Below are positions 10,801-63,116 of a stretch of DNA of 64,000 nt, piece by piece. A model generated the notes under the pieces. It ran no database searches. It worked only from the letters and a program-made list of their open reading frames with translations, and was not told the DNA's origin. Where the stretch lies: the IMG/VR virus record IMGVR_UViG_3300009703_004110, positions 248,001 through 312,000 of that record; one strand, written 5' to 3'. Both the position numbers and the translations under genes were made by a program. Each line of letters starts with the position of its first letter. The first letter of the stretch is position 1.

Positions 10801-10892
10801 TGGTACACCCGGTAGGATTCGAACCTACGATGAAGGATCTCTCCTTGCCTGGTTAAGAGCCAGGGGCGATCGGCCTCTCCGCTCACGAGTGC
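10801..10892 (-). tRNA. tRNA with Lys anticodon (CTT) and a long variable arm
   Basis: CCTGG-CTCTTAA-CCAGG; V-arm AAGGA-GAGA-TCCTT; 92 nt; CCA. Confidence 0.85.
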
Positions 10893-18908: not shown

Positions 18909-19082
18909 ATTTCCAATCCATTATTTTCTCCAATGGTATAACCAAACAGATTCGAACTGTTAACTCCCGGCCTTCCACCCGACGTTTTACCAAGATAGAT
19001 CATGAATCCCATAATCACCATCCTTAAACTACAGTTATAAAAATGAGCATTATACTTTGCAGTGTAGTATAATATACTTGCA

Positions 19083-50812: not shown

Positions 50813-52483
50813 TTACTCGTATGCATTCATGCTGCCACTTTCAATCTTGGCTGCTTCGACTTCCAACTTCTCTCGCATCAGTGGGCTTAGAATATCACAC
50901 TTAGCAGGACGCTTTGCCCAATCAGCATTAAGACGCTCACGCATTTGATCGAAGTCTTCGAAGACATAATCAACAGGTCCACAGTCCCAGATGACCTCAA
51001 GCAAGTCTGTCTCCATACGATAATCTTCCCAGCTTGTTCCTGTTGCAGGATATACCTTCAACTCAGAACCAACGGAATTAACGATGGTAAGTCCGGGCAG
51101 GCTCATCTTGCTAAGGTCACGACTCGGCTTCTTCATAACATCACGAACCGTTCCGTCCGCATACTCGATACGACAAAGCTTGGTTGCACACTTTAGTGTG
51201 TCACGGTTCTGCTTCTGTAGCAAACCACCGCCCATACCAAAGGCGACATTCTGAGCACTATAACCAGCATTCAAAACGGCACGGAGAATAGCGGCAAGGA
51301 TGCGAGCATCAATACCGTCTCCCTGGATTACAGCCGCTCCGTTAAGAACCTTGTAACCCTTGCTGTTAACTGTCACACCGAATGCTGCCTCGCAAGCTTC
51401 CAGTCCATCTAGAACACATCTAACAGGATCGCCAGAGTCAGGACGTACTACGAATAGAATTCCCTGCTTCTGCGCCAGTGGTGCAATCTGAGGAAGAATC
51501 GTCCAAAGGAACGATGCTCGATCAGGATTATTATAGTTATAAGAATCAGCAACACAGCTAAGGATTGCTCCCTCAGGAGTGATTCCAATAAGATGCTCAA
51601 CTGCGGCCATTTCCTTAGGCCAAGCTGTCATCACACTGTGCTCAGATGCAAGTACCGATTCACCAACCGGACGACCTTCGTTCCACTTAGTTGCAAGCCA
51701 ACCAGCAGTCATGGTATCAGTACCTTCAAAACTTAGAAGGTGACCGGCACCAGTAGTCATCGCAGTTTCTGCGCTCGATACTCCACGCGAACCAAAATCA
51801 TGCAAACGGCTGGGAAGCAAGAAGTCAAGCTCTGCTTCAACAGACTCATCAAATGCGGCACGAATCAGACGCCAAACATGACGGCTCTTAGTAGCAGTAA
51901 CGGACGGGCTCCACAGACGCATCAACGCAGTCTCAAGCCAAGTCACCAGATACACAAACTCATCGTCTGTTAGATTATCTGTGCTTGCCGTAATTGTAAA
52001 GCAAGGAACATTCGGATAAACCACTGTTCCATCACGTAGCGCCTTAATCTTGATGGGAATATATCCACCATTATCTACGACCTTCTGCCATAGATGCTTG
52101 GGCCAACTCATCGGAGTCTTTGCGACACCATGAGTCTTTAGATAGGTCTCTGCTTCATCTACTTCAAACTGCTCAATTCGATGAGAGATAACAGTTTCAA
52201 ATAGGTAGCGCATACCAAAGAAAACGATTCGCTCGTCCTCTGCTGTGAGTGGGCCACGGAATGTAAAGTACGCAGTCATTGACTTTGCGTCAGGATACAT
52301 CTGCCAGTGTCCAGTCTTATAAGTATCCGTGTCCAGTAGGAACGGGATACGTCGAGGGTCGCTTTTTAGAATGTCAATCTTAAGCTGTTCCATCAGATCC
52401 GCTAAGGCATCTGATCCTGCTGCGCCGTGTATCTGTAAGATATTACATTCTGCTTCTCTAATAATATCATTTATATTTCTCAT
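50813..52483 (-). CDS. nadV: Nicotinamide phosphoribosyltransferase
   Basis: TDTYK..H..MYP, LHDFGSRG, ASEHS, VRPDSGDP, IQGDG, FGMGGGLLQ. Confidence 0.95.
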   Translation of the reverse strand: MRNINDIIREAECNILQIHGAAGSDALADLMEQLKIDILKSDPRRIPFLLDTDTYKTGHWQMYPDAKSMTAYFTFRGPLTAEDERIVFFGMRYLFETVISHRIEQFEVDEAETYLKTHGVAKTPMSWPKHLWQKVVDNGGYIPIKIKALRDGTVVYPNVPCFTITASTDNLTDDEFVYLVTWLETALMRLWSPSVTATKSRHVWRLIRAAFDESVEAELDFLLPSRLHDFGSRGVSSAETAMTTGAGHLLSFEGTDTMTAGWLATKWNEGRPVGESVLASEHSVMTAWPKEMAAVEHLIGITPEGAILSCVADSYNYNNPDRASFLWTILPQIAPLAQKQGILFVVRPDSGDPVRCVLDGLEACEAAFGVTVNSKGYKVLNGAAVIQGDGIDARILAAILRAVLNAGYSAQNVAFGMGGGLLQKQNRDTLKCATKLCRIEYADGTVRDVMKKPSRDLSKMSLPGLTIVNSVGSELKVYPATGTSWEDYRMETDLLEVIWDCGPVDYVFEDFDQMRERLNADWAKRPAKCDILSPLMREKLEVEAAKIESGSMNAYE

Positions 52484-52747: not shown

Positions 52748-53881
52748 CTAGTATGCCATGCTTTCGATAATATCAAGGTGATCCTCAAACAAAAGGTGTG
52801 GCATATCATTAATGACTTCGCTTAGAGCGAACCATTGTACTCTGGTTACTTCCCTCTCAAATCCACGCTCGGGCTTAAGTTGGGGAATCTTAAACCATGA
52901 AGGAACATCCCATCGAAACGCATGTGTGAGCACACGCCCACGCTGGCTTCTCTTTGGGTGATCGAAACGGTCTTCCTTAGTCAACCATTCGTCACGTACC
53001 TTCATTCGTGTCTCTTCCTGTAGCTCGCGCTTTGCGCCAGCAACAGCCGTCTCATCCGCCTCAAGGAATCCTCCTGGCAGAGCCCACAGTCCCTTGCCGG
53101 GATGTGAGCGACGACGAACAAGTAGAATGTTACCCTGATGGATAACTACATTATCTGTCGTCATAAACTGTAGCTTATGACCAGCGGGGCTAATTTGCCT
53201 AATCCTTTCTCCGGACTCATCAATGATCCAGAGATACTGATCTTTTGGCAACCCTTCTAATGGGTCATACTTGCTTCGATACTTTAGAATATGCTTATGT
53301 CCAGCGGCCATGTTCTTGCCGTGCTCTGTGCCTATCCATTGGGACAGGAGCTCTGAAGTAGATGAGGCAACAAGGCTCATCCAGTCATTGGACTCGTTCA
53401 TATAAAGTCCGTGCATAATTTCTGCATATCGGCTTTCAATATCTTCAATAACCTCTACCTCAGAATTCCATCGAGGGAAGCTATTTAAATAGTCAGTTTC
53501 TTCATGCCTTCTATCTACACCATACAAAGTGATATTGCAATCACTTAGTCGGTGATCTGGCCCATAGGCTGACTTAATTCCTTCTGAGACAGCCTCTTGA
53601 ACCTTAGTAAGAAAACGTGTCTTATTATACCAGTAATCACGAGCCCTTCTGTATTCGACCTTGTGATAATCTAAACCGTAATCTGCAAGGGCCTCATCAA
53701 TCATGTTTGATCGTTCTGCCGCTACAAAGGGGTCTCTGGAGTCACGGGCTGTATCAGATGAGCCAAGGATAACTACTACAATGTTATTATCACTAATGGC
53801 CGGGCTGAATAGCCGCTCAATTTGTTCTAGGGTCACAGGCTGAAATCGCCCAATGATTACGCCTACATTTGGATTCTGCAT
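52748..53881 (-). CDS. NMN adenylyltransferase-like/Nudix bifunctional protein (NadM-Nudix), HxGH motif degenerate
   Basis: IGRFQP, GS...RDPF..AER; GLWALPGGF...RELQEET; FEDH. Confidence 0.88.
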   Translation of the reverse strand: MQNPNVGVIIGRFQPVTLEQIERLFSPAISDNNIVVVILGSSDTARDSRDPFVAAERSNMIDEALADYGLDYHKVEYRRARDYWYNKTRFLTKVQEAVSEGIKSAYGPDHRLSDCNITLYGVDRRHEETDYLNSFPRWNSEVEVIEDIESRYAEIMHGLYMNESNDWMSLVASSTSELLSQWIGTEHGKNMAAGHKHILKYRSKYDPLEGLPKDQYLWIIDESGERIRQISPAGHKLQFMTTDNVVIHQGNILLVRRRSHPGKGLWALPGGFLEADETAVAGAKRELQEETRMKVRDEWLTKEDRFDHPKRSQRGRVLTHAFRWDVPSWFKIPQLKPERGFEREVTRVQWFALSEVINDMPHLLFEDHLDIIESMAY

Positions 53882-54217: not shown

Positions 54218-54526
54218 TTACTTTTTTGCGGAAAGAATATCTAAATAAAATAATATCTCCAAGTCATCGTCGCCAAGACCTGACATGAATTCTTCCCCAT
54301 CGATTGTAGTCGCACAGCCTGTGTGATTAATTTTAACAAAAGTGACTTTGCCGTGATCTGATACAAAACCAACCTTATCAGAATCCATAATAACAACATT
54401 CATACGCCTTGGCGACGTAACTCTAACTTTTCGACTATTGATTAACGAAATATAAACGAGCATGGCCCGGCTCTTTTTCTTAGCACAATATTCTATAAAA
54501 GAAAGCTTCCGCCCAATCTTTATCAT
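54218..54526 (-). CDS. Hypothetical protein, C-terminal-tag family
   Basis: Ends LEILFYLDILSAKK. Confidence 0.55.
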   Translation of the reverse strand: MIKIGRKLSFIEYCAKKKSRAMLVYISLINSRKVRVTSPRRMNVVIMDSDKVGFVSDHGKVTFVKINHTGCATTIDGEEFMSGLGDDDLEILFYLDILSAKK

Positions 54527-54984
54527 AGCAAAGGAAGGTGGCCGGTAATCCTATCAACATCTTCAACAAAACCTGGGCCAATTGCAACGGCTGTCTTTGT
54601 CGGAACACCATCAAACTCAGTGAATCCAGCGTCGGTGATTAAAGAGCACGGAAGATTAGCGGCCTTAGCCGCCTCATATAACTCCACTAACTCTTCTTCA
54701 CTATCAACACTAACACAGATCTTAGCAAACCTTCCGGCAATCCAAGCACAGACACCCTGTAGCTTTCTGATATAACTCTTAAGCCCCCTTGGACCGAAAT
54801 GTAAATCTACTACCCCGTAAATCCCGCCTTCTTCCCAAAGACCTATATCACCACTACCCCAATCAATTAGATCTAATAGTACAGCGCAAGAAGCATGAGC
54901 GCCTTGCGACACCATCTTACCTTTCCTCATATTAAGATCTTTTCTTATTATGATTACCTGCTTTGCTTTATAATTTTTGGTCAT
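54523..54984 (-). CDS. pth2: Peptidyl-tRNA hydrolase type 2
   Basis: KQVIIIRKDLNMRKGKMVSQGAHA, DAGFTE, TAVAIGP, ITGHLPLL. Confidence 0.93.
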   Translation of the reverse strand: MTKNYKAKQVIIIRKDLNMRKGKMVSQGAHASCAVLLDLIDWGSGDIGLWEEGGIYGVVDLHFGPRGLKSYIRKLQGVCAWIAGRFAKICVSVDSEEELVELYEAAKAANLPCSLITDAGFTEFDGVPTKTAVAIGPGFVEDVDRITGHLPLL

Positions 54985-55559
54985 ATATTCCTCGGTGGCT
55001 TTACGGCCTCAACATTTAAACTAACCAAAGTTCCTTTGTGCCATATTTCATCTGGCAGCTCATTACCATCCTCATCATGCCTTGGAACATAATCCCTGCT
55101 CCAGTCTCTTACATTAGCATGTGAAGTTGTAAATGGATCATATCGTTTGATATTGACAAATCCCATTTCAGACAAATCTTTTTGAAGCTGGTTGAAATCC
55201 CATCCCCAACAGTGATAGTCGTAAGGATTTCTTTGGCCACCGAACATGGTGCCTCTTATCTCAGATAGATCACCAGTCTCATTGTAGTGACGAATCAGCC
55301 CTTCAAAATCAGGAACCGAAATCCTTAGCATTCCGCCCGGTGCTAACAAATCAAGTAAGGTTGATAGAACATCTTTGTACTCGTGTCGTGAGAAGTGTTC
55401 TAAAACATGGCAAGCATAGATGTAATCAACACTGTTCTTTTCAAACTTTGTATGCAAATCTTTTATATCACATATCAAATCAGTAGCGTCAGTTTCATAA
55501 ATATCTATGTTTACAAAGCCTTCTATCTTTTTTGGTCCGCATCCTAAATGTAATTTCAT
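54981..55559 (-). CDS. Class I SAM-dependent methyltransferase
   Basis: LHLGCG, HVLEH, GGMLRISVPDF, SLNVEA. Confidence 0.88.
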   Translation of the reverse strand: MKLHLGCGPKKIEGFVNIDIYETDATDLICDIKDLHTKFEKNSVDYIYACHVLEHFSRHEYKDVLSTLLDLLAPGGMLRISVPDFEGLIRHYNETGDLSEIRGTMFGGQRNPYDYHCWGWDFNQLQKDLSEMGFVNIKRYDPFTTSHANVRDWSRDYVPRHDEDGNELPDEIWHKGTLVSLNVEAVKPPRNI

Positions 55560-55575
55560 TTTCCCTTCAATTTTA

Positions 55576-55651
55576 TGGCACGCTGTAAGGGATTCGAACC
55601 CTTGACGCGGAGGTCTAGAATCTCCCGCTCTGACCGCTGAGCTAACAGCGC
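55576..55651 (-). tRNA. Amber suppressor tRNA (anticodon CTA)
   Basis: 76-nt cloverleaf; GGAGA-TTCTAGA-CCTCC (A31/C39 mismatch), G73, CCA. Confidence 0.8.
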
Positions 55652-55730
55652 AAAATGAAATAGAAAGCTTAGGCCGAAGCCTTTGTGTCCTCTCTATTTC
55701 ATTACCCTTTGAATTTTGTTTTTAGCTTGC

Positions 55731-56105
55731 TTACTGAAGGCTTGCCGCATACAGCGCTGTCTTGGCTGAGTAGTTGCTGTTTGAAAGTGCCCAACTTCTC
55801 ATCCAATCCCAATCACCCATCACATAGGCAGAGAATTGAGTTTCAGAAAGGTCAATCTCTGTGTCTACAGACATTTCCTGCATTCGGATAATTCTATCGA
55901 AGGTTTTGACATGTGATTGCAGTTCTGCTAAGCTAAATTGCATATTAACTTTTTCGCCATTCTCTAGTTGGCGCAGCTTCTTCATTAAAATTCTCTTGGA
56001 CTCTCGACGATAGCCCTCCATCACCTCTTCATACATTTCGATGTGCTCTTCTCGGTTAGTTCTTAGCGCCTCAAGAACATCTTTTCTTAATACTGTTACA
56101 TTCAT
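55731..56105 (-). CDS. Conserved phage hypothetical protein
   Basis: NREEH...F..YV...W.W motif. Confidence 0.7.
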   Translation of the reverse strand: MNVTVLRKDVLEALRTNREEHIEMYEEVMEGYRRESKRILMKKLRQLENGEKVNMQFSLAELQSHVKTFDRIIRMQEMSVDTEIDLSETQFSAYVMGDWDWMRSWALSNSNYSAKTALYAASLQ

Positions 56106-56132
56106 TTCGTCACGGCTTCCCCTTATATTTCC

Positions 56133-56426
56133 TCACTTTGCATATACCTCGTTCAGAGGCCAGAATCCATATCCTGTACGGATCCCTTTGATTAATCTTC
56201 TTAAGATTGCAGCTTCCTCATTAGAAACTACACGAGACCAAAAGTGTCTTAAGAAATCTTCTCTATCTTCATAGTCAAGATATTGGTTTGAACCAAATCC
56301 ATAATGAAGTGGCTGATTAGATGGAATTTTGCTTTGTGCGTTATTCCACTCTTCTTCCTCCATTAATGCTACTCCGCCAAGATTAAACTCATCAGCCCAA
56401 TTATCATTAAAGTAAATTAACAACAA
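56133..56426 (-). CDS. Hypothetical protein
   Basis: DNWADEF, FGSNQ. Confidence 0.65.
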   Translation of the reverse strand: MLLIYFNDNWADEFNLGGVALMEEEEWNNAQSKIPSNQPLHYGFGSNQYLDYEDREDFLRHFWSRVVSNEEAAILRRLIKGIRTGYGFWPLNEVYAK

Positions 56427-56427
56427 T

Positions 56428-56655
56428 TCAATCTCCTTTGTTATTCAAAAATGAAATGAACACTCCAGAACGTTCATCCCACCATGTAAATTCAACATAA
56501 ATACTTGAAATAACATTTGCTGCACTACTTTTTTCAGTTACTCTCAGCCAAACTCCACCGGGCAAATTCATGGCTGATGTAACAATGTCACCACTACCAT
56601 AGCCACCATAAGATTTATCTACTCTTAACCACTTGCCCATTATGGGGTCGCTCAT
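56428..56655 (-). CDS. Hypothetical protein
   Basis: Small ORF. Confidence 0.55.
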   Translation of the reverse strand: MSDPIMGKWLRVDKSYGGYGSGDIVTSAMNLPGGVWLRVTEKSSAANVISSIYVEFTWWDERSGVFISFLNNKGD

Positions 56656-56658
56656 AAT

Positions 56659-57597
56659 TTAACCATTAAAAAGATGTTTACAAATAGCTCGACCTCTGCG
56701 ATCGATCTGCTTCCACTTAATCTTAAAACTATCAGATTCTCTTCCGCCAAATATCTTGGCATTACTATGAACCTCAGATAAGCCTGCAAGTAACAAAGTA
56801 ATTGCAACGATCTTATTTCTACAGAACTCTTCAGCTTCTGATGCTTTGATAGTATGAATCTCCATATCTCTCAGAATAAGCTCTCCAATAATTGGGTCGC
56901 CATTAATTTTATTCCAAGTCTGATATGATATCTTTGCGTGATCAGGAAAATGAACACGGCCTTCTTCATCCATTTCTTTACAGTAAGGCTTGCCACAATC
57001 ATGCATGGTAGCGTACTGCTGAATGATATCCGATGATAACAAACTATTTTTGATATCCTCTCTGTACCCTTCAAACCAAGAAGGCAGTTTCCAGTCTAGT
57101 CGCAACTCTTGTCCGTCCAGATAATGAAGCAAATCTTCATAATGCTTCCAGACGGATAGTCCGTGCTCGTAAATTGTTTGCCCTTTGGTCTGCTCTATAT
57201 GCTTCATATCTCGTACCACTTTTTGGTACGGCGTCTCTGGCTGACTAAATTCTTTTAGTGCCAGCGGAAGCGAGCCACAGAATCTTCGACCTTTATCTCC
57301 AGGCTCAATTGCAAGTGCAGTAATCTGATTGTTAATGTCGGGCTCTCGAAAAACAGAAAATCTAATCTTCTTCTTTTCGGCTCGTGCAATCAGCTTGATT
57401 AGCTCGTCTTCATCCTTCGCAGATAGAATTGCGATATGATTAGAAGACTGATACCATTCCGATTCGATCTCAGAATGCTCTGAAATGAATTCACGAAATG
57501 CGTGAAGTGCCTGTGCAATTTGTGTGCCAGGATCTAAATCCTTGCGAGTAATAATATATAGCTTGTCAGTTGGACAGAGGCCCTAAGTGTGTTCCAT
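56659..57597 (-). CDS. Pth2-like domain plus HD domain fusion, in-frame TAG at codon 5 (312 aa if read through)
   Basis: SD AGGAGAGG; ATG GAA CAC ACT TAG; KLYIITRKDL.PG.QIAQALHA...FREPDI...TALAI...LPLA; MHDCGKP...HFPDH. Confidence 0.85.
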
Positions 57598-57606
57598 TTC
57601 CCTCTC

Positions 57607-58014
57607 CTATAAGGTCTGTTGTATGCTATCCATATCTTCTATCTCTATTTCATCAAAGCCAAAGTCGGCTTGAAATGTGCGGACGCTAGTGCTATCTGTT
57701 TCATCAGAATGAATTGAGTGCCAATACTGCCCATCATATTCTGCGTTATTTACAAGATGCACATGATGCACATGATAGACTCTTCCATTAATTTCTTTAC
57801 TTAACCAAGTAGATAAAAGACGCTTATTCTTTCCCGATTCTCCAGCTTCGCCAGTAATATACCAGCCATGCCCAAATAATGAATCGGTGTTTCCAATGCC
57901 CCACTCATCAGAAGTTAAGTTATTATAAAGATGATTCATTCTATCTCTGTAGAAATCCCATTCTCCAATCCATAGAACATTATAACCAACATCTGAATAA
58001 GTATTCCTGCCCAT
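57607..58014 (-). CDS. Hypothetical protein
   Basis: SD GGGAG. Confidence 0.6.
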   Translation of the reverse strand: MGRNTYSDVGYNVLWIGEWDFYRDRMNHLYNNLTSDEWGIGNTDSLFGHGWYITGEAGESGKNKRLLSTWLSKEINGRVYHVHHVHLVNNAEYDGQYWHSIHSDETDSTSVRTFQADFGFDEIEIEDMDSIQQTL

Positions 58015-58066
58015 CTTAATTCTCCCATGTGATATGCAGGCCGGTAGGCGGCAAAATCTTTATAGT

Positions 58067-58297
58067 CTATTCACTCTCGTCAGCTTTCTCTTTCACTAAT
58101 TTAATATAAGCAGTATAAGCAACTTGACTATATGCCATGTTAATTGAGGCGGACATTACTACCAGTGATATACCAAAGATTGCTTCTTCATCTGTGCCAT
58201 GCATCATATCATAAATGATATAAGCAAATTCCTCTGGTGTGTTTTGTTCAATTAATTTCTTACAAAACCGGGCTGGGTCGATTGACTCTAATAACAT
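58067..58297 (-). CDS. Hypothetical protein
   Basis: SD GAGG. Confidence 0.55.
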   Translation of the reverse strand: MLLESIDPARFCKKLIEQNTPEEFAYIIYDMMHGTDEEAIFGISLVVMSASINMAYSQVAYTAYIKLVKEKADESE

Positions 58298-58313
58298 GGT
58301 TTCCTCGTAATTA

Positions 58314-58390
58314 TGGAGGCGACGGCAGGATTCGAACCTGCGAATAGACGAGTTGCAGTCGCCTCCCTTAAGCCTCTTGGGTACGTCGCC
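58314..58390 (-). tRNA. tRNA-Cys(GCA)
   Basis: Loop CTGCAAC, U73, CCA. Confidence 0.92.
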
Positions 58391-58420
58391 ATTATGGGGA
58401 GATTTCTCTCCCCAATTAGA

Positions 58421-58783
58421 TCAGTTCAAAAGTTCCTTCACACGTTCCAACGTCCAGTCCTTCCTTTCGGAATAACCTACGTGAGACTTAATGATGCTCA
58501 AAACCTCTTCCGCGTCAGGCGCCTCCTTGCAACTTGCTTCAATCTTACGATAAGCCATACCCCTAATGAGGCCATTGGCTACGTTAAGACTGCGAGCATA
58601 AGATGCCCGGTCAACACGAAGTGATGCTGCCGCATACGTAGTGTTGCCCCAATGCTTAGTCTCCTGAGAGTCTATCATCTTCTGCGCTGTTTGAAATAAA
58701 GTTCTGGCTCTTGCCTTCACCATACGGCGATGGTAAGCGGTTGACTTAAGTTCTGCTCTAAGTAGTTCACGATACATATTCAT
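58421..58783 (-). CDS. Basic helical hypothetical protein downstream of the amber-RGPP leader
   Basis: SD AAGGA; ARSLNVANGLIRGMAYRKIE. Confidence 0.75.
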   Translation of the reverse strand: MNMYRELLRAELKSTAYHRRMVKARARTLFQTAQKMIDSQETKHWGNTTYAAASLRVDRASYARSLNVANGLIRGMAYRKIEASCKEAPDAEEVLSIIKSHVGYSERKDWTLERVKELLN

Positions 58784-58799
58784 TTTGTTTTATCCTTTT

Positions 58800-58919
58800 T
58801 TAGTTTTTTTGAATTGCTGCCATCACAGCCGACTTTGTGTGGCACGATTTAAACGCTGTTATATCAACTCCAAAACTAAAAGGTGGACCTCTTGCATAAG
58901 TCTAACAATATTCTCGCAT
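58800..58919 (-). promoter_or_regulatory. Leader peptide MREYC-amber-TYARGPP (stop-readthrough/arrest attenuator)
   Basis: SD GGAG; TAG at 58904-58902; RGPP at 58892-58881; anti-SD pairing with 58794-58816. Confidence 0.75.
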
Positions 58920-58937
58920 AACTATCTCCATATTAAC

Positions 58938-58966
58938 AATATACCGAAGTGTACATTGTCGTTCAA
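58938..58966 (-). promoter_or_regulatory. Sigma70-type promoter
   Basis: TTGAAC-N17-TATATT with an AT-rich upstream element. Confidence 0.65.
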
Positions 58967-58984
58967 AAAAATTTAATTAGTTTC

Positions 58985-59752
58985 TTACAGAAACCTACTA
59001 ACGTACTCTCTATCTTCTTTAAAGAGAGGAATCTCCCAGTCGATAGTCCATCTATTACGTTTGGCTATCACAGTTTCTTTAGCCCCATGCTTCATAAAAG
59101 TCACAGGTTCTTCAAAGCTTTTACGAGTTACAGTAAATCCTTTTTGAAAATGACTTGGGACGTCTTCCCACGGAGTACCATTATTTCTCAACATTTCTTT
59201 CATCTGCAAAACAGTTCTACCATTACATTCTTTATGAGAAAAATAATGCCTTGCATACATTGAAACAGAATTGCGCAAAGCGTCTTGCTGTCTCCATACA
59301 AAAGCATTAACAACTTCATGCTCAGGAAGATTCCAGAACCTAGAATCAAATTTTGGTCTAGAGTCTGCAAGGCTTGGATCGCTCATAACTAATGCTGCAT
59401 AAAACTCAACTGCTACAGCAGAAGCAATAACGCTATTCATCTTTCTGGTTTTATAACCAAAATAAGGCTGAGTCTGCTCTGATTCAGTATCAGTTATTAG
59501 AAAGGATATTTCATCAGACTGGACGTAAGCCATCTTACAACCTTGGATTTCTTGGCACCCAACAATGGCACCTACAGCCATAGCCAAAACAAATTTTTCA
59601 TTCCAAGGAGAATTAGCTTCTTTCTTTAGACTCTTAGTAAATTTACTAAAATTCTTTCCATCTACTCGGCCAATAACAGGAACGCCACTAACTAGCTTAA
59701 AGTTAGTTTGCTTCTCGTAACCCTTCATCCTATTTTCTAATGTATCAAACAT
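58985..59752 (-). CDS. tRNA(His) guanylyltransferase Thg1-like protein
   Basis: RMK.YE, RVDGKNFSKFT, YVQSDEIS, FDSR, WRQQDA.RNS. Confidence 0.93.
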   Translation of the reverse strand: MFDTLENRMKGYEKQTNFKLVSGVPVIGRVDGKNFSKFTKSLKKEANSPWNEKFVLAMAVGAIVGCQEIQGCKMAYVQSDEISFLITDTESEQTQPYFGYKTRKMNSVIASAVAVEFYAALVMSDPSLADSRPKFDSRFWNLPEHEVVNAFVWRQQDALRNSVSMYARHYFSHKECNGRTVLQMKEMLRNNGTPWEDVPSHFQKGFTVTRKSFEEPVTFMKHGAKETVIAKRNRWTIDWEIPLFKEDREYVSRFL

Positions 59753-60182
59753 CGGGAGCCTCTCCGCTCTTAGTTATCTGCTCAGCTGCCGCAATACCCG
59801 CCAGCTTATCAACCACTTCGTTATATTCATTTCCAGCATGACCCTTAACCCATTTAATATCAAGGTTTGGACAGTTTTCTAATTTTTCTCTTATTGTTTT
59901 AACACGCTCGGTATTCTTCCTAGCAATCCAGTTCTTAGTAAAAAGTCCCACACAGTAACTTGAGTCGGTATATATAACGGCCTCTTCCCAATTCCTGCCT
60001 TCTCTTATTAGATAATCTATGGCATACTCTATTCCGCTCATTTCAGCAACATTATTTGTCTCGACTCCAATGTGGCCGGCACAATAGTGTATTACCTTAT
60101 CATCTTCTAAAACTATAACGCCATATCCTGCTGGACCTGGATTGGTTGGCTTGCATGAGCCATCCGTATATATTGAGATCAT
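59745..60182 (-). CDS. rnhA: Ribonuclease HI
   Basis: YTDGSC..NPGP, TNNVAE, TDSSY, WVKGHAG...NE.VD.LA. Confidence 0.94.
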   Translation of the reverse strand: MISIYTDGSCKPTNPGPAGYGVIVLEDDKVIHYCAGHIGVETNNVAEMSGIEYAIDYLIREGRNWEEAVIYTDSSYCVGLFTKNWIARKNTERVKTIREKLENCPNLDIKWVKGHAGNEYNEVVDKLAGIAAAEQITKSGEAPDV

Positions 60183-60202
60183 CTGTTATTAGACTCCTTA
60201 GG

Positions 60203-60814
60203 TTATGCTAGCTCCTCGTAAAGAGCCTCGTCATTTCTGCATCTTTTACGTAGTTCAGTATACCAAGCTTGATTCTTAACTTTGAACATTAAGACGCCAG
60301 GCTTCTTTGGATGCTTGGCTTTGCATACTACGCCTTCGAATGTCATCCCCGGTAACGTACCGTTTCTAACTTGCTCTAAGAACGTGGCATTCGGCTTACC
60401 TCTATAGAGCATAGGTGCTATATCTAAATGTCCAAACAGCTTTAAGAATTCTTTGGGCGGAACCATTCCGCTCTTAAATAGATTGGCATCAAACAAGACT
60501 ATTTGATGCTCTTCGGTATTGTCGTGCCATCCAAAAGATGAACTCTCTCCAAAGAATTCAAAGAACAATACGACTTTATCGAGCCGTTGTTTTCTCATGA
60601 TCTTGGAAACATCATCTTCGTACTTATTTCGGATAAGACCTATGGCTTCACCAAAGGTTTCGTCGTCTGCACCAAGCATTCTCTTGCGAGTGCCAAACTT
60701 ATAGAAGCCACGCTTCTTTGACCATTCGGCTCTGATGTTGGAACCATCTAATTTGTCAAAGGCATAAACATCAAGATTAGATATCTCGCCTGTTATTGAT
60801 GGATACTGTTTCAT
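60203..60814 (-). CDS. RNA-ligase-like nucleotidyltransferase
   Basis: KLDGSN, EFFG, LFD, EGVVCK, FKVK. Confidence 0.75.
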   Translation of the reverse strand: MKQYPSITGEISNLDVYAFDKLDGSNIRAEWSKKRGFYKFGTRKRMLGADDETFGEAIGLIRNKYEDDVSKIMRKQRLDKVVLFFEFFGESSSFGWHDNTEEHQIVLFDANLFKSGMVPPKEFLKLFGHLDIAPMLYRGKPNATFLEQVRNGTLPGMTFEGVVCKAKHPKKPGVLMFKVKNQAWYTELRKRCRNDEALYEELA

Positions 60815-60815
60815 T

Positions 60816-61106
60816 TTATTTCCAGATGATTACCCTGTTCTCTCTTGAGTCTATAACATAAGAAAAATAAACCGCGCCCTCTTTGGCAGGGTCTATTTTT
60901 TCATATACTTCTATAGCCGGACCAGTACTGTAATCAATAAAGTTTACTCTTTTAAGGTTGACAATACCTGCCTCATAAAACATATCACTATAATCGTATG
61001 CCTCTACCGGAACCAGCAAGAAGCCGTTCATAATTGTTCCAGCAACCTCTTGGTAGGCGCGCTCCTCGTTATCTTCATCTACATATTTTCTTGTATTCAT
61101 ATGCAA
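60816..61106 (-). CDS. Hypothetical protein
   Basis: ORF with SD. Confidence 0.55.
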   Translation of the reverse strand: MHMNTRKYVDEDNEERAYQEVAGTIMNGFLLVPVEAYDYSDMFYEAGIVNLKRVNFIDYSTGPAIEVYEKIDPAKEGAVYFSYVIDSRENRVIIWK

Positions 61107-61121
61107 CCTCAGCTTATTTTA

Positions 61122-61198
61122 TGGTAGCCCCATCAGGAGTCGAACCTGAAACCTTTCGCCTATCAAGCGACTGCTCTAGCCAATTGAGCTATGGAGCC
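61122..61198 (-). tRNA. tRNA-Ile(GAT)
   Basis: Loop TTGATAG, CCA. Confidence 0.88.
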
Positions 61199-61278
61199 AC
61201 ATTCATAATAAGTGGTCGTGTGGTTGCCCGCAGTCCCACACGACCTTACCCTAGGTCGTAACTTTACTTATTATGAAA

Positions 61279-61356
61279 TGGTAGGGGTAGTTGGATTTGA
61301 ACCAACGGCCTTTCGCTTATCAGGCGGCTGCTCCAACCAAACTGAGCTATACCCCT
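61279..61356 (-). tRNA. tRNA-Ile(GAT), weak anticodon stem
   Basis: Loop CTGATAA, CCA; only 3 bp in the anticodon stem. Confidence 0.75.
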
Positions 61357-61770
61357 AAATACTTTATTGCTTCACGCAATCTATCAACATCATCTTCAAA
61401 CATTCCAAGTCCAGTATTACAGTTGCTACAAAGCAGACCTCTTACTTTTCTAGTAGAATGGCAATGATCAACGTATGGTGTTCCTTTAAAAGTTACTTTA
61501 CAAATCCCACAAGAATTATTCTGAGCAGCTCTCATATCTTTAAAGTCTTCTAATGTAATACCATATTTATACTTCAACTGATATGACTTCTCAGTTGAAT
61601 ATTTATTTTCCTTCTTACTTTTTTGACGAGAAAGATTATAACACTGTGTCGTACAATATTTAGCCTTCCCTCGTCTAACCTTAATAGCTAAAGCAATGAA
61701 GTCTTGATTGCAACCCTGGCAAACTCTCTTAACCTTTTTTCCCGCCTCTACCTTTCGTATTATCTATCAT
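61347..61770 (-). CDS. Endonuclease VII-like homing endonuclease with one extra base near the start
   Basis: KYGIT...Q...CGIC...VDHCH...VRGLLC..CN.GLG; upstream CxxC frame continues to ATG 61770 after a shift. Confidence 0.85.
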
Positions 61771-61931
61771 AGTATCCCCTCTATGTATATAGTAATAGAT
61801 TTTGGACTAGTGCGACAAACCGTATTCGCCTACTCTCCAAATAGAAACCATGTAACCATTGTAATAAAAAATGCAGTGACTGGATCAATTCCCATACACA
61901 TAAATAAAAAGAAAAAGAAGAAAAATGACAC

Positions 61932-63116
61932 CTATACCTCACTTACAATATTCATTCCAAGAAAAGTCATGCCTAGTGCCAAGTCATCTAACATTGGCTG
62001 AAACAAAGCTTGTCCCTCTGGATTATTCTGAATTTTAACATCCATATAAAGTCCGTTAATTTTCTTTGCTAACTTAACCAGAGCCGTTAGTAAAGTCTTT
62101 GGATTAAGATCACTTTGTGATTTAATCAAAGCATAGATAAGCTCCGGAGACTTTAGCGCACCAGACTCTGGCTTTAGCCCGGCACTCTGTAAGCGTGCCA
62201 AAGTATAGCTCAAGTATAGGCCAGAAGATTGTTTCAGAGATTTAATCTGGTCCAAATCTAATTTCTTAGTACTCTTTGGTGAGCTATTCAAAATGAAGCC
62301 AACTAATACATTATACGCCAAATCAGGGTTTGGAAACTCGTCAATCAGTAGATCATAAACCTCTTGGGCCATGACGGTGTTGCCCTCCCTGCTTGACATC
62401 TTCTTCCCTTTAGCGATTACTAGTCCAAGCGGAACATGCGTAATTTCGCCCTCGGGAAATAGCTGTGCCAACTTCTTAAAGTGCGGGCCTTGCTCCGAAC
62501 CCGTTAGATATAACTTACTCTCACCATTCCAGGCTTGAGCTAGAGCGACGTCTTGCCAAAAATAGCTAGTACTTCCATCGCTTTTAATTCCAACAACATA
62601 CTCGTCGTCAGCTATAAAGCCTTTAGTACCTTCATACTTACCATTTCCGCTTACTAAAAGAGAATCGTCATTCAATATCATATCTGATGCAAAGAAGACT
62701 GCACCATTAATATAGTAGTCAGACCACTTAAGCCATTCTTCTAGTTTGCTTAGGGCGTCTTCTTTGGAAACATCACCATCTAATGTGTCCCCAAGGATGG
62801 CCACAAAGTCAAGGCCAATCCCCATGTTTTCAAATGCTTTGGCAATGACAAGGTTTGATAGGTGACCAATATGAAGGTGCTTATTTAGATTCGGACTAAA
62901 CCCATCAACTATCGAATAAGCCTTAGGCTCTACAAACAGATCGTGTAGACTTATACTCTCTGGAATATTAATGTTAGTAAACCTTCCAGACTTAACCAAA
63001 GTTAAGCTATGATAGTCTGCCCACTTACTGATCTCTTCTGATGGTTTGCCAAATACACATAAAGCAAAGTCCATCATCGGCGGCGTTGTAGCTACCTTTC
63101 CAATATCGATTTTCAT
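61932..63116 (-). CDS. argS: Compact arginyl-tRNA synthetase
   Basis: FSPNLNKHLHIGH, KSDG...Y...D, KMSSREG, YLSYT.ARL.S. Confidence 0.88.
   Translation of the reverse strand: MKIDIGKVATTPPMMDFALCVFGKPSEEISKWADYHSLTLVKSGRFTNINIPESISLHDLFVEPKAYSIVDGFSPNLNKHLHIGHLSNLVIAKAFENMGIGLDFVAILGDTLDGDVSKEDALSKLEEWLKWSDYYINGAVFFASDMILNDDSLLVSGNGKYEGTKGFIADDEYVVGIKSDGSTSYFWQDVALAQAWNGESKLYLTGSEQGPHFKKLAQLFPEGEITHVPLGLVIAKGKKMSSREGNTVMAQEVYDLLIDEFPNPDLAYNVLVGFILNSSPKSTKKLDLDQIKSLKQSSGLYLSYTLARLQSAGLKPESGALKSPELIYALIKSQSDLNPKTLLTALVKLAKKINGLYMDVKIQNNPEGQALFQPMLDDLALGMTFLGMNIVSEV

Follow-up and report, generated by a model that had tools for sequence, protein, structure and literature searches.

A leader in an uncultivated jumbo phage that may gate an RGPP arrest motif through an amber codon and the phage's own suppressor tRNA

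In arrest-peptide leaders of the RAPP/RGPP kind, a core of the form R-[AG]-P-P stalls the ribosome over an element that sequesters the ribosome-binding site (RBS) of the next gene (PMC7897499, PMC10951233, PMC12992588). These cores block peptide-bond formation with Pro-tRNA in the A site (PMC10951233; PMC12992588), and RGPP is the most robust among them: it is refractory to EF-P, and varied N-terminal sequences can support it (PMC12992588). Here we describe a leader of similar build in a stretch of 64,000 nucleotides (nt) from IMG/VR virus record IMGVR_UViG_3300009703_004110, which derives from an uncultivated jumbo phage and which, at its full length, we call the window. Its sequence agrees without differences with that 332-kb IMG/VR contig and with a metagenome contig of 391 kb (Ga0114933_10000002). 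The leader precedes a gene for a 120-residue protein, referred to below as gene120, and its RGPP core lies behind an in-frame amber codon. We propose that this leader acts in cis as a translational switch and reports on whether the amber-suppressor tRNA of the phage itself works, and we put the probability of that reading at roughly 0.7.

All genes of the window lie on the minus strand, as do all of the window features located in this text. The leader sits in a gap of 201 nt between the gene for a Thg1-like tRNA-His guanylyltransferase (58985-59752), which ends 65 nt before the leader ATG, and the open reading frame (ORF) of gene120 (58421-58783). It opens with a Shine-Dalgarno (SD) sequence, GGAG (58926-58929), placed 6 nt before an ATG (58919-58917), and the codons ATG CGA GAA TAT TGT then specify M-R-E-Y-C (58905-58919). 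There follows an in-frame amber codon, TAG (58902-58904), the gate of our proposal. Beyond it the same frame continues (58881-58901) through ACT TAT GCA into AGA GGT CCA CCT, the R-G-P-P core (58892-58881). A ribosome is predicted to stall there with Pro12 (58886-58884) occupying the P site and Pro13 (58883-58881) the A site. An anti-SD arm (58865-58884) is made up of the second Pro codon together with the U-rich stretch that follows; this arm falls inside the footprint of a ribosome stalled at Pro-Pro and pairs with an SD arm (58793-58816) composed of an A-rich stretch and the gene120 SD, AAGGA (58797-58793). The tail of the read-through frame (58800-58880) is not conserved and is open as far as a TAA (58802-58800) that lies 16 nt before the gene120 ATG (58783). 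No terminator-like site or hairpin is found in 58300-59100, a search that did not extend to Rho utilization (rut) sites; since the leader lacks a terminator, we take its control to be translational.

The mechanism we propose is the following. A promoter-like site would give rise to a short transcript whose first ORF reads M-R-E-Y-C-UAG, and release factor 1 (RF1) would compete with the phage's tRNA-CUA (55576-55651) at the UAG. When there is no suppression, RF1 would terminate translation there; judging from standard footprint sizes, the terminating ribosome would cover the transcript to about 58892, short of the anti-SD, the gene120 RBS would stay paired, and gene120 would not be translated. 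When the tRNA-CUA decodes UAG, by contrast, the ribosome would proceed seven codons on and arrest at R-G-P-P with the two prolines in the P and A sites. That is, the arrested ribosome would occupy the anti-SD arm and thereby free the SD, 75-90 nt downstream, for translation of gene120. A first-pass annotation, made from the letters of the window, had listed the GGAG, the six-nucleotide spacer, the ATG, four codons, the TAG, three codons and RGPP, all of which are in place; it had further supposed that only ribosomes reading through the UAG stall at RGPP and expose the SD, so that the leader measures termination efficiency. The architecture behind that supposition stands and draws support from comparison, while the arrest of a 13-residue chain at RGPP, the activating rather than repressing effect of arrest, and the role of gene120 are steps that we infer. 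As to what is measured, we narrow the earlier wording to the activity of the phage's suppressor tRNA in its competition with the release factor, because the type of stop in the leader changes with the anticodon of the tRNA at the same locus.

The window alone does not place this arrangement above chance; its significance comes from comparison. There is one RGPP 12-mer in the 64 kilobases (kb), against some 1.4 R[GA]PP 12-mers expected in shuffled sequences, and the fold of the leader is no better than that of shuffles (z = -1.05); the duplex between its two arms is weakly better (P = 0.03-0.08). A strict version of the leader pattern, scanned over the window with three mismatches allowed, finds this site alone, with 0 expected. 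The strict pattern has no match in viral contigs beyond the source contig, a look for related loci with single close proteins likewise leads back to that contig alone, and the cultured-phage collection yields no relative, whether by megablast with the locus or by tblastn with gene120, P0119 and P0130; that search gave two insignificant matches to Stenotrophomonas phages. One might suppose, given a motif count at shuffle level and so ordinary a fold, that we are looking at a common 5' untranslated region whose short ORF, stop and RGPP were picked out of the six frames of 64 kb. We give this supposition next to no weight, and regard it as already refuted by the comparison that follows, in which the arrangement is kept in eight close and more than 20 distant relatives and co-varies with their tRNAs.

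The close set consists of eight leaders of the window type, namely that of the window itself and those of loci L003, L004, L006, L007, L010, L017 and L019, one leader having come from a metagenome pattern scan. The gene120 homologues of this set are 54-63% identical, lie on contigs of up to about 400 kb where these are unfragmented, and have the Thg1 gene upstream. The alignment was made without any motif search. All eight leaders consist of an SD, six nucleotides, ATG, four codons, TAG, three codons, and AGA GG[TGC] CC[ACG] CC[TC]; GGAGA and the TAG are invariant, and the stretch from ATG to RGPP has no insertion or deletion in any of them, while the sequence past RGPP is unalignable. The encoded peptide is M-R-[EAD]-[YF]-[CRF]-stop-[TV]-[YCS]-[AI]-R-G-P-P, in which the nine residues before RGPP are partly conserved (M-R-x-[YF]-x-X-[TV]-x-[AI]). 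The Gly codon and both Pro codons differ among the eight leaders at third positions only, and the Arg codon AGA does not vary. Third-position variation of this kind, in three consecutive codons 3' of a TAG that never varies, marks the stop as one that is translated through. The aligned sequences thus indicate that, through the TAG and in the frame of the leader ATG, coding constraint acts on the RGPP codons.

A profile search with gene120 uncovers a wider family, with 104 representatives at E below 0.001. Its distant members, at about 30% identity and on other jumbo contigs, stand directly 5' of a gene for the peptidyl-tRNA hydrolase PTH2, often with overlapping stop and start codons; after PTH2 come a protein with a tRNA-binding domain, an HD protein and, beyond these, unusual tRNAs. 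In the first distant set, which was fetched by protein homology alone, 22 of 25 loci have exactly one RGPP-coding 12-mer upstream of the gene, where the chance of meeting such a 12-mer in a 320-nt stretch is about 0.7%. RGPP lies 25 nt from the gene in a single leader and 56-71 nt away in the others. Across 26 leaders, Arg is encoded by AGA, CGA, CGT or CGG, and each of the four bases occurs at the third position of both the Gly and the first Pro codon. The unbiased evidence consists of the window-type alignment together with this distant match rate.

The distant leaders differ in how RGPP is reached. In L020 and L021 the RGPP is in the +1 frame with respect to the sole ORF led by an SD, and has no start in its own frame, a fact noted ahead of any look at the tRNAs. 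In L020 the leader encodes M-N-E-L-UAGA, from which a +1 shift leads on to Y-T-R-A-R-G-P-P. Fifteen distinct leaders (L021, L023, L025, L026, L027, L029, L030, L031, L032, L034, L035, L038, L039, L042 and L043) have a short ORF ending in UGAA, followed in the +1 frame by C-[KNA]-A-...-R-G-P-P. In L022 and L041 an in-frame TAG lies two or three codons before RGPP. A third subfamily (L045:3828-3878, L046:3789-3839, L047:3715-3750) has K-P-P-stop in place of RGPP, behind one or two in-frame stops. For example, the L046 leader reads M-R-TAG-V-S-G-F-T-TAG-V-R-V-L-K-P-P-TGA, and its homologue in L045 reads M-T-TAA-V-S-G-F-T-TAA-V-R-V-F-K-P-P-TGA; L047 and L049 have one TAG each ahead of K-P-P-stop. 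The gene120 of this subfamily is just 78-109 amino acids long, with the suppressor tRNA directly after it. A scan for further K-P-P-stop members returned the two known contigs and L049, and no others. This subfamily may combine arrest at a stop with arrest gated by a stop.

Some smaller features of these leaders may be recorded here. Right before the TAG (58905-58907 in the window), five of the eight window-type leaders have the Cys codon TGT, two have CGT and one has TTC; in leaders of the TGAA type, the codon that comes first behind the quadruplet likewise specifies Cys or Arg. A mini-ORF in L021, ATG CAA GGC GCC TGA, was rejected as the gate, which the wider set puts in the upstream ORF ending TGAA. 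L026, L027, L030, L032 and L042 possess a second mini-ORF (M-Q-G-G or M-Q-C-[GA]) that starts from the ATG inside TGAATG; the second mini-ORF ends in TGAA in five cases, where it would also enter the RGPP frame, and ends otherwise in other leaders.

The proposed input of the sensor is a tRNA. Among the 19 tRNA genes of the window, one has the anticodon CUA (55576-55651; 56.9 bits), and its closest counterpart in the window is tRNA-Phe, at 72%. A tRNA-CUA also lies downstream in L004 and L010. More generally, an in-frame TAG goes together with a tRNA-CUA in the window, L004, L010, L022, L041, L046, L047 and L049, with two tRNA-CUA genes each in L022 and L041. In L045, whose leader has two in-frame TAA codons, the tRNA is tRNA-UUA. 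In L020, where the signal is TAGA with RGPP in +1, we find a tRNA with an anticodon loop of eight nucleotides, CU-UCUA-AU. The tRNA of L021 has an 8-nt loop reading AU-UUCA-AC, and each of the 15 loci with UGAA leaders holds one such tRNA or two, the 8-nt loop containing UUCA. There are, in this way, five pairings: TAG with CUA, TAA with UUA, TAGA(+1) with UCUA, TGAA(+1) with UUCA, and TAG with CUA ahead of K-P-P-stop. Among the loci that show both parts, the number of mismatches between stop and anticodon is zero. As a control, a TGAA-type DNA pattern was matched seven times in bacterial metagenome-assembled genomes (MAGs); none of these matches shows the +1 frame relation or comes with a suppressor tRNA.

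The tRNAs with 8-nt loops (L020:5801-5875, L021:7207-7282, L025:5864-5937, L026:6255-6408, L035:5837-5909, L042:5144-5217, L043:6334-6409 and others) score 44-56 bits with the Rfam tRNA model. Their loops holding UCUA or UUCA are CUUCUAAU, AUUUCAAC, UUUUCAAC, CUUUCAAU and ACUUCAAA/G, and ARAGORN labels some of them Glu(ttc) or (tc). By their sequence they look like tRNAs of Glu or Arg type with an extra A 3' of the anticodon, and they would read UGAA or UAGA with a +1 shift. Two further observations belong beside these. Four Steroidobacteraceae MAG contigs (L054:4359-4392, L055:7005-7038, L056:3333-3366, L058:7420-7453) share a near-identical 35-nt accidental match to the pattern, which is not a family member and seems to be conserved among those contigs. 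In L003 (5097-6354) and L010 (4864-5106), a gene resembling Glu/Gln-tRNA synthetases (tRNA-synt_1c) lies a few kb 3' of the leader, and may be relevant to the amino acid borne by the CUA tRNA.

We now turn to the masking of the gene120 SD. The first-pass annotation had noted an imperfect complementarity between the segment 58883-58865 and the SD region of gene120 (58816-58794), and this complementarity is present: RNAduplex pairs 58884-58871 with 58808-58793, including the SD AAGGA, with a free energy (dG) of -9.3, and the same helix occurs in both the minimum free energy (MFE) fold and the centroid fold. The second Pro codon and the bases next to it pair with the gene120 SD in the MFE fold of all seven window-type leaders that were folded; in the eighth, L019, which was not folded, one sees by eye that CCUUAUGAUU can pair with AAUCAUAAGG, which holds its SD. 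The partners change together from leader to leader, as in CCUUUU../..AAAAGG, CCCUU/AAGGG, CCUUGU/ACAAGG and CCCUUCU/AGAAGGG. When the Pro codons are kept and the tail is shuffled, the duplexes become weaker in six of the seven leaders (P from 0.002 to 0.11), and the Fisher combination of the seven tail values is about 5e-5, a figure to which L010 and L017 contribute values that are not fully independent. Once the footprint of a ribosome stalled at Pro-Pro is masked, the SD is more likely to be unpaired in all seven leaders, its probability of being so going, for example, from 0.29 to 0.80 in L017. For most of the distant leaders, too, pairing is predicted between the SD and the Pro-Pro codons (CCUCC), and in L041 CCUCCUAAAAUGUC and its exact complement form a perfect helix of 13 base pairs. 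The comparison of folds with and without the masked footprint, and the search for covariation in homologous leaders, had both been suggested at the first pass; the one gives a more accessible SD and the other a pairing kept through compensating changes.

A hairpin of this kind might control gene120 by itself, as a thermosensor or as a site for a protein or small RNA, with the mini-ORF and RGPP merely incidental to it. All eight window-type leaders and most of the distant ones are indeed predicted to form the pairing, and CCNCCU, being similar to the 3' end of 16S rRNA, would pair with any SD. A role confined to the RNA would, however, leave unexplained the invariant SD and ATG, the fixed spacing of nine codons, the restriction of variation to third positions, and the use of AGA, CGA or CGT for Arg. 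Nor would it explain why the stop codon is invariant, or why the type and frame of the stop match the suppressor tRNA's anticodon. We consider this explanation very improbable.

A further rival is translational coupling. Ribosomes that read through the stop could melt the helix, finish at the start of gene120 and reinitiate there, in which case RGPP would be a pause, or its CCNCC simply the anti-SD, and suppression would control gene120 without a true arrest. The read-through frame is open to the RBS in five of the seven window-type leaders tested, for which shuffles give an estimate of about 0.001; by a strict count it is open in four of seven, the TAA of the window falling on the boundary used. 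In those five it stays free of stops up to 16 nt or less from the gene start, and three leaders end in a TGA that overlaps the ATG (ATGA), while the other two frames hold two or three stops each; in L022, L034 and L038 the frame runs into the gene. In L007 and L010, on the other hand, the frame ends 57-73 nt upstream, and in distant leaders it ends 9 to 56 nt upstream. Coupling would also leave unexplained the amino-acid conservation of Arg and Gly in the RGPP-type leaders, since an anti-SD needs just C-rich Pro codons. For these reasons we judge coupling without arrest unlikely. The two mechanisms could nevertheless act in sequence, arrest first and coupling after release. Ribosomes freed from arrest may also couple to the gene120 start, a route that we treat as secondary or as a rival.

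The same sensor might also work with the opposite sign, or with another output. In this case arrest would lead to cleavage of the messenger, to termination by Rho or to drop-off, and hence to lower expression of the operon, or else the peptidyl-tRNA would itself be a signal to PTH2. Very short ORFs are prone to peptidyl-tRNA drop-off, as in the bar minigenes of phage lambda. This proneness, the joining of gene120 to PTH2 in the distant relatives, and the position of the suppressor tRNA downstream in the same orientation all speak for such an output. The conserved, co-varying helix between anti-SD and SD beneath the stall site is, by contrast, the classic design of activation by arrest (SecM, MifM, ApdA), and no cleavage or rut-like feature was found, though no systematic search was made. 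We regard a repressing or otherwise redirected output as decidedly improbable.

Returning to our reading of the leader as an activating switch, several facts weigh against it. A RAPP-like core alone is insufficient without an adjacent N-terminal segment (PMC12992588), and here the chain is just 13 residues long. A frame that is open to the RBS in most leaders fits passage through RGPP and coupling rather than a hard arrest. The mean unpaired probability of the window's SD rises merely from 0.62 to 0.81 when the footprint is masked, L007 has no excess complementarity in its tail (P = 0.67), and the fold of the window leader, as noted above, is at shuffle level. The RGPP of the distant leaders was found by an R-G-P-P regular expression, so that its non-synonymous invariance arises partly by construction. 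Five of the close relatives are on contigs, or were fetched with flanks, too short to show the tRNA. Finally, 13 of the 86 ORFs in the window end in TAG as an ordinary stop, and its 64 kb yield no gene that carries this codon in frame.

The setting of the leader suggests what such a switch would be for. Because the suppressor tRNA or PTH2 follows gene120 in many relatives, the circuit is probably a feedback or a checkpoint on suppressor-tRNA activity. Since TAG still ends ordinary ORFs of the window, where no recoded gene was found, a homeostat that limits suppression is as plausible as a timer of a code switch. Extended to the whole family, the proposal would be one of jumbo-phage "decoding-state sensors". 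Here a stop of the kind UAG, UAA, UAGA or UGAA would be tuned to the suppressor tRNA that the phage itself encodes, including +1 readers with 8-nt loops; suppression would lead to arrest at RGPP or K-P-P-stop, and arrest would unmask the RBS of an operon of gene120, PTH2 and often the suppressor tRNA, as a checkpoint on the level or timing of stop reassignment. We hold this wider proposal at even odds.

The regulated gene itself, gene120 (58421-58783), encodes a basic, all-helical protein of 120 amino acids whose homologues always stand behind such leaders. It belongs to no Pfam or PHROG family, and a profile search of the PDB was also empty. The AlphaFold model built from 78 sequences reaches a predicted local distance difference test (pLDDT) score of 96.9, compared with 70.6 for an earlier model from six sequences, and it predicts a long basic helical hairpin and a small helical domain with the motif NIAYGLLRG-PY--IE. 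Compared with solved structures the model has no fold match; three uncharacterised phage proteins match it.

In the window, gene120 is followed directly by tRNA-Cys(GCA) (58314-58390), whose position is kept in most of the close relatives, and further on by the tRNA-CUA, a methyltransferase (54981-55559) and PTH2 (54523-54984; E 2e-30). In distant relatives PTH2 forms an operon with gene120, overlapping or adjacent. What comes directly after gene120 is the suppressor tRNA in L045-L047, and PTH2 with the tRNA later in L020-L044. The Thg1-like gene upstream keeps its synteny in the relatives. These genes are part of a cluster linked to tRNA and translation (54523-63116), of which the same set, in another order, surrounds the distant leaders; within it lie an ArgRS-like protein (61932-63116), an RNA ligase (60203-60814), an RNase H (59745-60182) and an HD protein (56659-57219). 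A NUDIX protein (52748-53881) and a NAPRTase (50813-52483) are further neighbours.

The promoter-like site consists of TTGAAC (58966-58961), a 17-nt spacer and TATATT (58943-58938), and would start a transcript just 5' of the leader SD. It is the sole sigma-70-like site within 58300-59100, and the TTG and GGTA..T columns of the promoter are invariant across the eight window-type leaders. An imperfect inverted repeat, ACAATGTA ... TATATTGT (58936-58959), covers the spacer and the -10 hexamer. With 64% of cells paired and four pairs changed on both sides (8 variants), this repeat beats all slid controls, and the relatives show compensating changes such as GATAGTA/TACTATC and GATAATA/TATTATC. Speculatively, the repeat could be an operator or a hairpin at the 5' end of the RNA. 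Elsewhere in the window there is a weak 102-nt match to the Rfam tRNA model (18937-19038; 30.8 bits), uncalled by ARAGORN, and a tRNA-Lys(CTT) call that is 92 nt long (10801-10892); both may be tRNAs that bear introns or are degenerate.

It remains to compare the leader with known systems. The suppression of stops by phages has been described in protein-coding genes: in code 15 and code 4 phages suppressor tRNAs recode stops, and this recoding has been proposed to time the late genes (bioRxiv 10.1101/2021.08.26.457843; PMC9523058). Our locus resembles those cases in that a phage suppressor tRNA would alter the meaning of a stop during infection. It differs in that those studies describe recoded protein genes and not a dedicated sensor, whereas TAG in the window is still a normal stop. 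The sequence past RGPP is not conserved, as it would be in a recoded gene of the code 15 kind. Recoding of TAG in the window at large was considered and rejected: the gain in coding coverage is no better than for other stops, and the candidate split ORFs are separate genes. For the jumbo phage XacN1, the describers found no target for the CUA suppressor tRNAs (PMC5852040). If our reading is correct, the suppressor tRNAs of standard-code jumbo phages would gain a concrete target. The leader also makes it testable how a phage monitors or limits a change of the genetic code while its own genes still use the stop in question. Moreover, the 8-nt-loop tRNAs matched to UGAA and UAGA would amount to natural quadruplet or +1 decoding with a built-in reporter, and the parts, being compact, would lend themselves to genetic-code engineering as orthogonal sensors of how efficiently stops are suppressed.

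The likeness to the +1 frameshift of prfB, the gene for release factor 2 (RF2), is that an early in-frame stop, at which a release factor competes with alternative decoding, sets the expression of a gene. In prfB, however, what competes with the release factor is P-site tRNA slippage on CUU U, assisted by an internal SD 3 nt upstream, and the product is RF2 itself. Here the competitor would be a virus-encoded suppressor tRNA, of the triplet or the 8-nt-loop kind, the consequence an arrest peptide and the unmasking of an SD, and the locus has no release-factor gene. The RGPP of the window shares the frame of its TAG, and no shift is needed; in the +1 relatives the P-site codons, UUG, CUC, UUC, GCC and GGC, are unable to re-pair in +1.

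In TnaC and PepNL, too, the behaviour of a short leader peptide at its stop codon controls downstream genes. Both arrest at the stop itself, and in PepNL read-through of the stop cancels arrest (PMC11890864), whereas here the stop precedes the arrest site and read-through would enable arrest. Amber codons have been placed by design into the leader peptides of tna or trp (Liu, Qi, Yanofsky and Arkin 2011, as related in PMC6412442). Those switches are synthetic and act on transcription termination, through a rut site or an attenuator. The present leader is natural and viral, would act on translation initiation, exists in UAA, UAGA and UGAA versions, and has near it none of the terminator-like sites of a trp- or tna-type attenuator. 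What the literature offers, then, is RGPP arrest peptides, phage stop-codon recoding, engineered quadruplet tRNAs and engineered amber switches in leaders; in the full-text papers searched, as distinct from those available by subscription only, no natural leader of this kind is described, and no natural phage tRNA that reads UGAA or UAGA. We know of no natural precedent for the decoding of a stop codon by a viral tRNA as the input of an arrest leader; the switches that operate in this manner are the engineered ones with an amber codon in the leader.

The RAPP/RGPP arrest peptides (ApdA, ApdP, ApcA, CruR and a Streptomyces set, related to the RAGP of SecM) are the nearest relatives in design. 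They share with our leader an R-[AG]-P-P core in a small upstream ORF, an arrest expected with Pro-tRNA in the A site, and a stall site over an element that sequesters an RBS, which for the window is predicted in silico. The known members are "monitoring substrates" with signal or transmembrane segments, released by the pulling of Sec or YidC or by a ligand (copper), and their motif is C-terminal. Here, in contrast, we have a chain of 13 residues without a targeting signal, a long tail of 8-34 codons after RGPP, and access to the arrest motif that would be gated by an upstream stop codon. Compared with the Sec/YidC class (SecM, MifM, VemP, ApdA/P), the leader has no hydrophobic segment, and the gene downstream is not sec or yidC. 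Because these defining features are lacking, we file the leader outside the Sec/YidC monitoring substrates, as an arrest-peptide leader with a new input. The class we would propose for it, gated by suppressor tRNAs, is defined by a recoding signal in the leader that matches the anticodon of a suppressor tRNA at the same locus, as is the case here. The known inputs of arrest leaders are protein export, membrane insertion, small molecules and antibiotics; in this leader the input would be the decoding of a stop by a virus-encoded tRNA.

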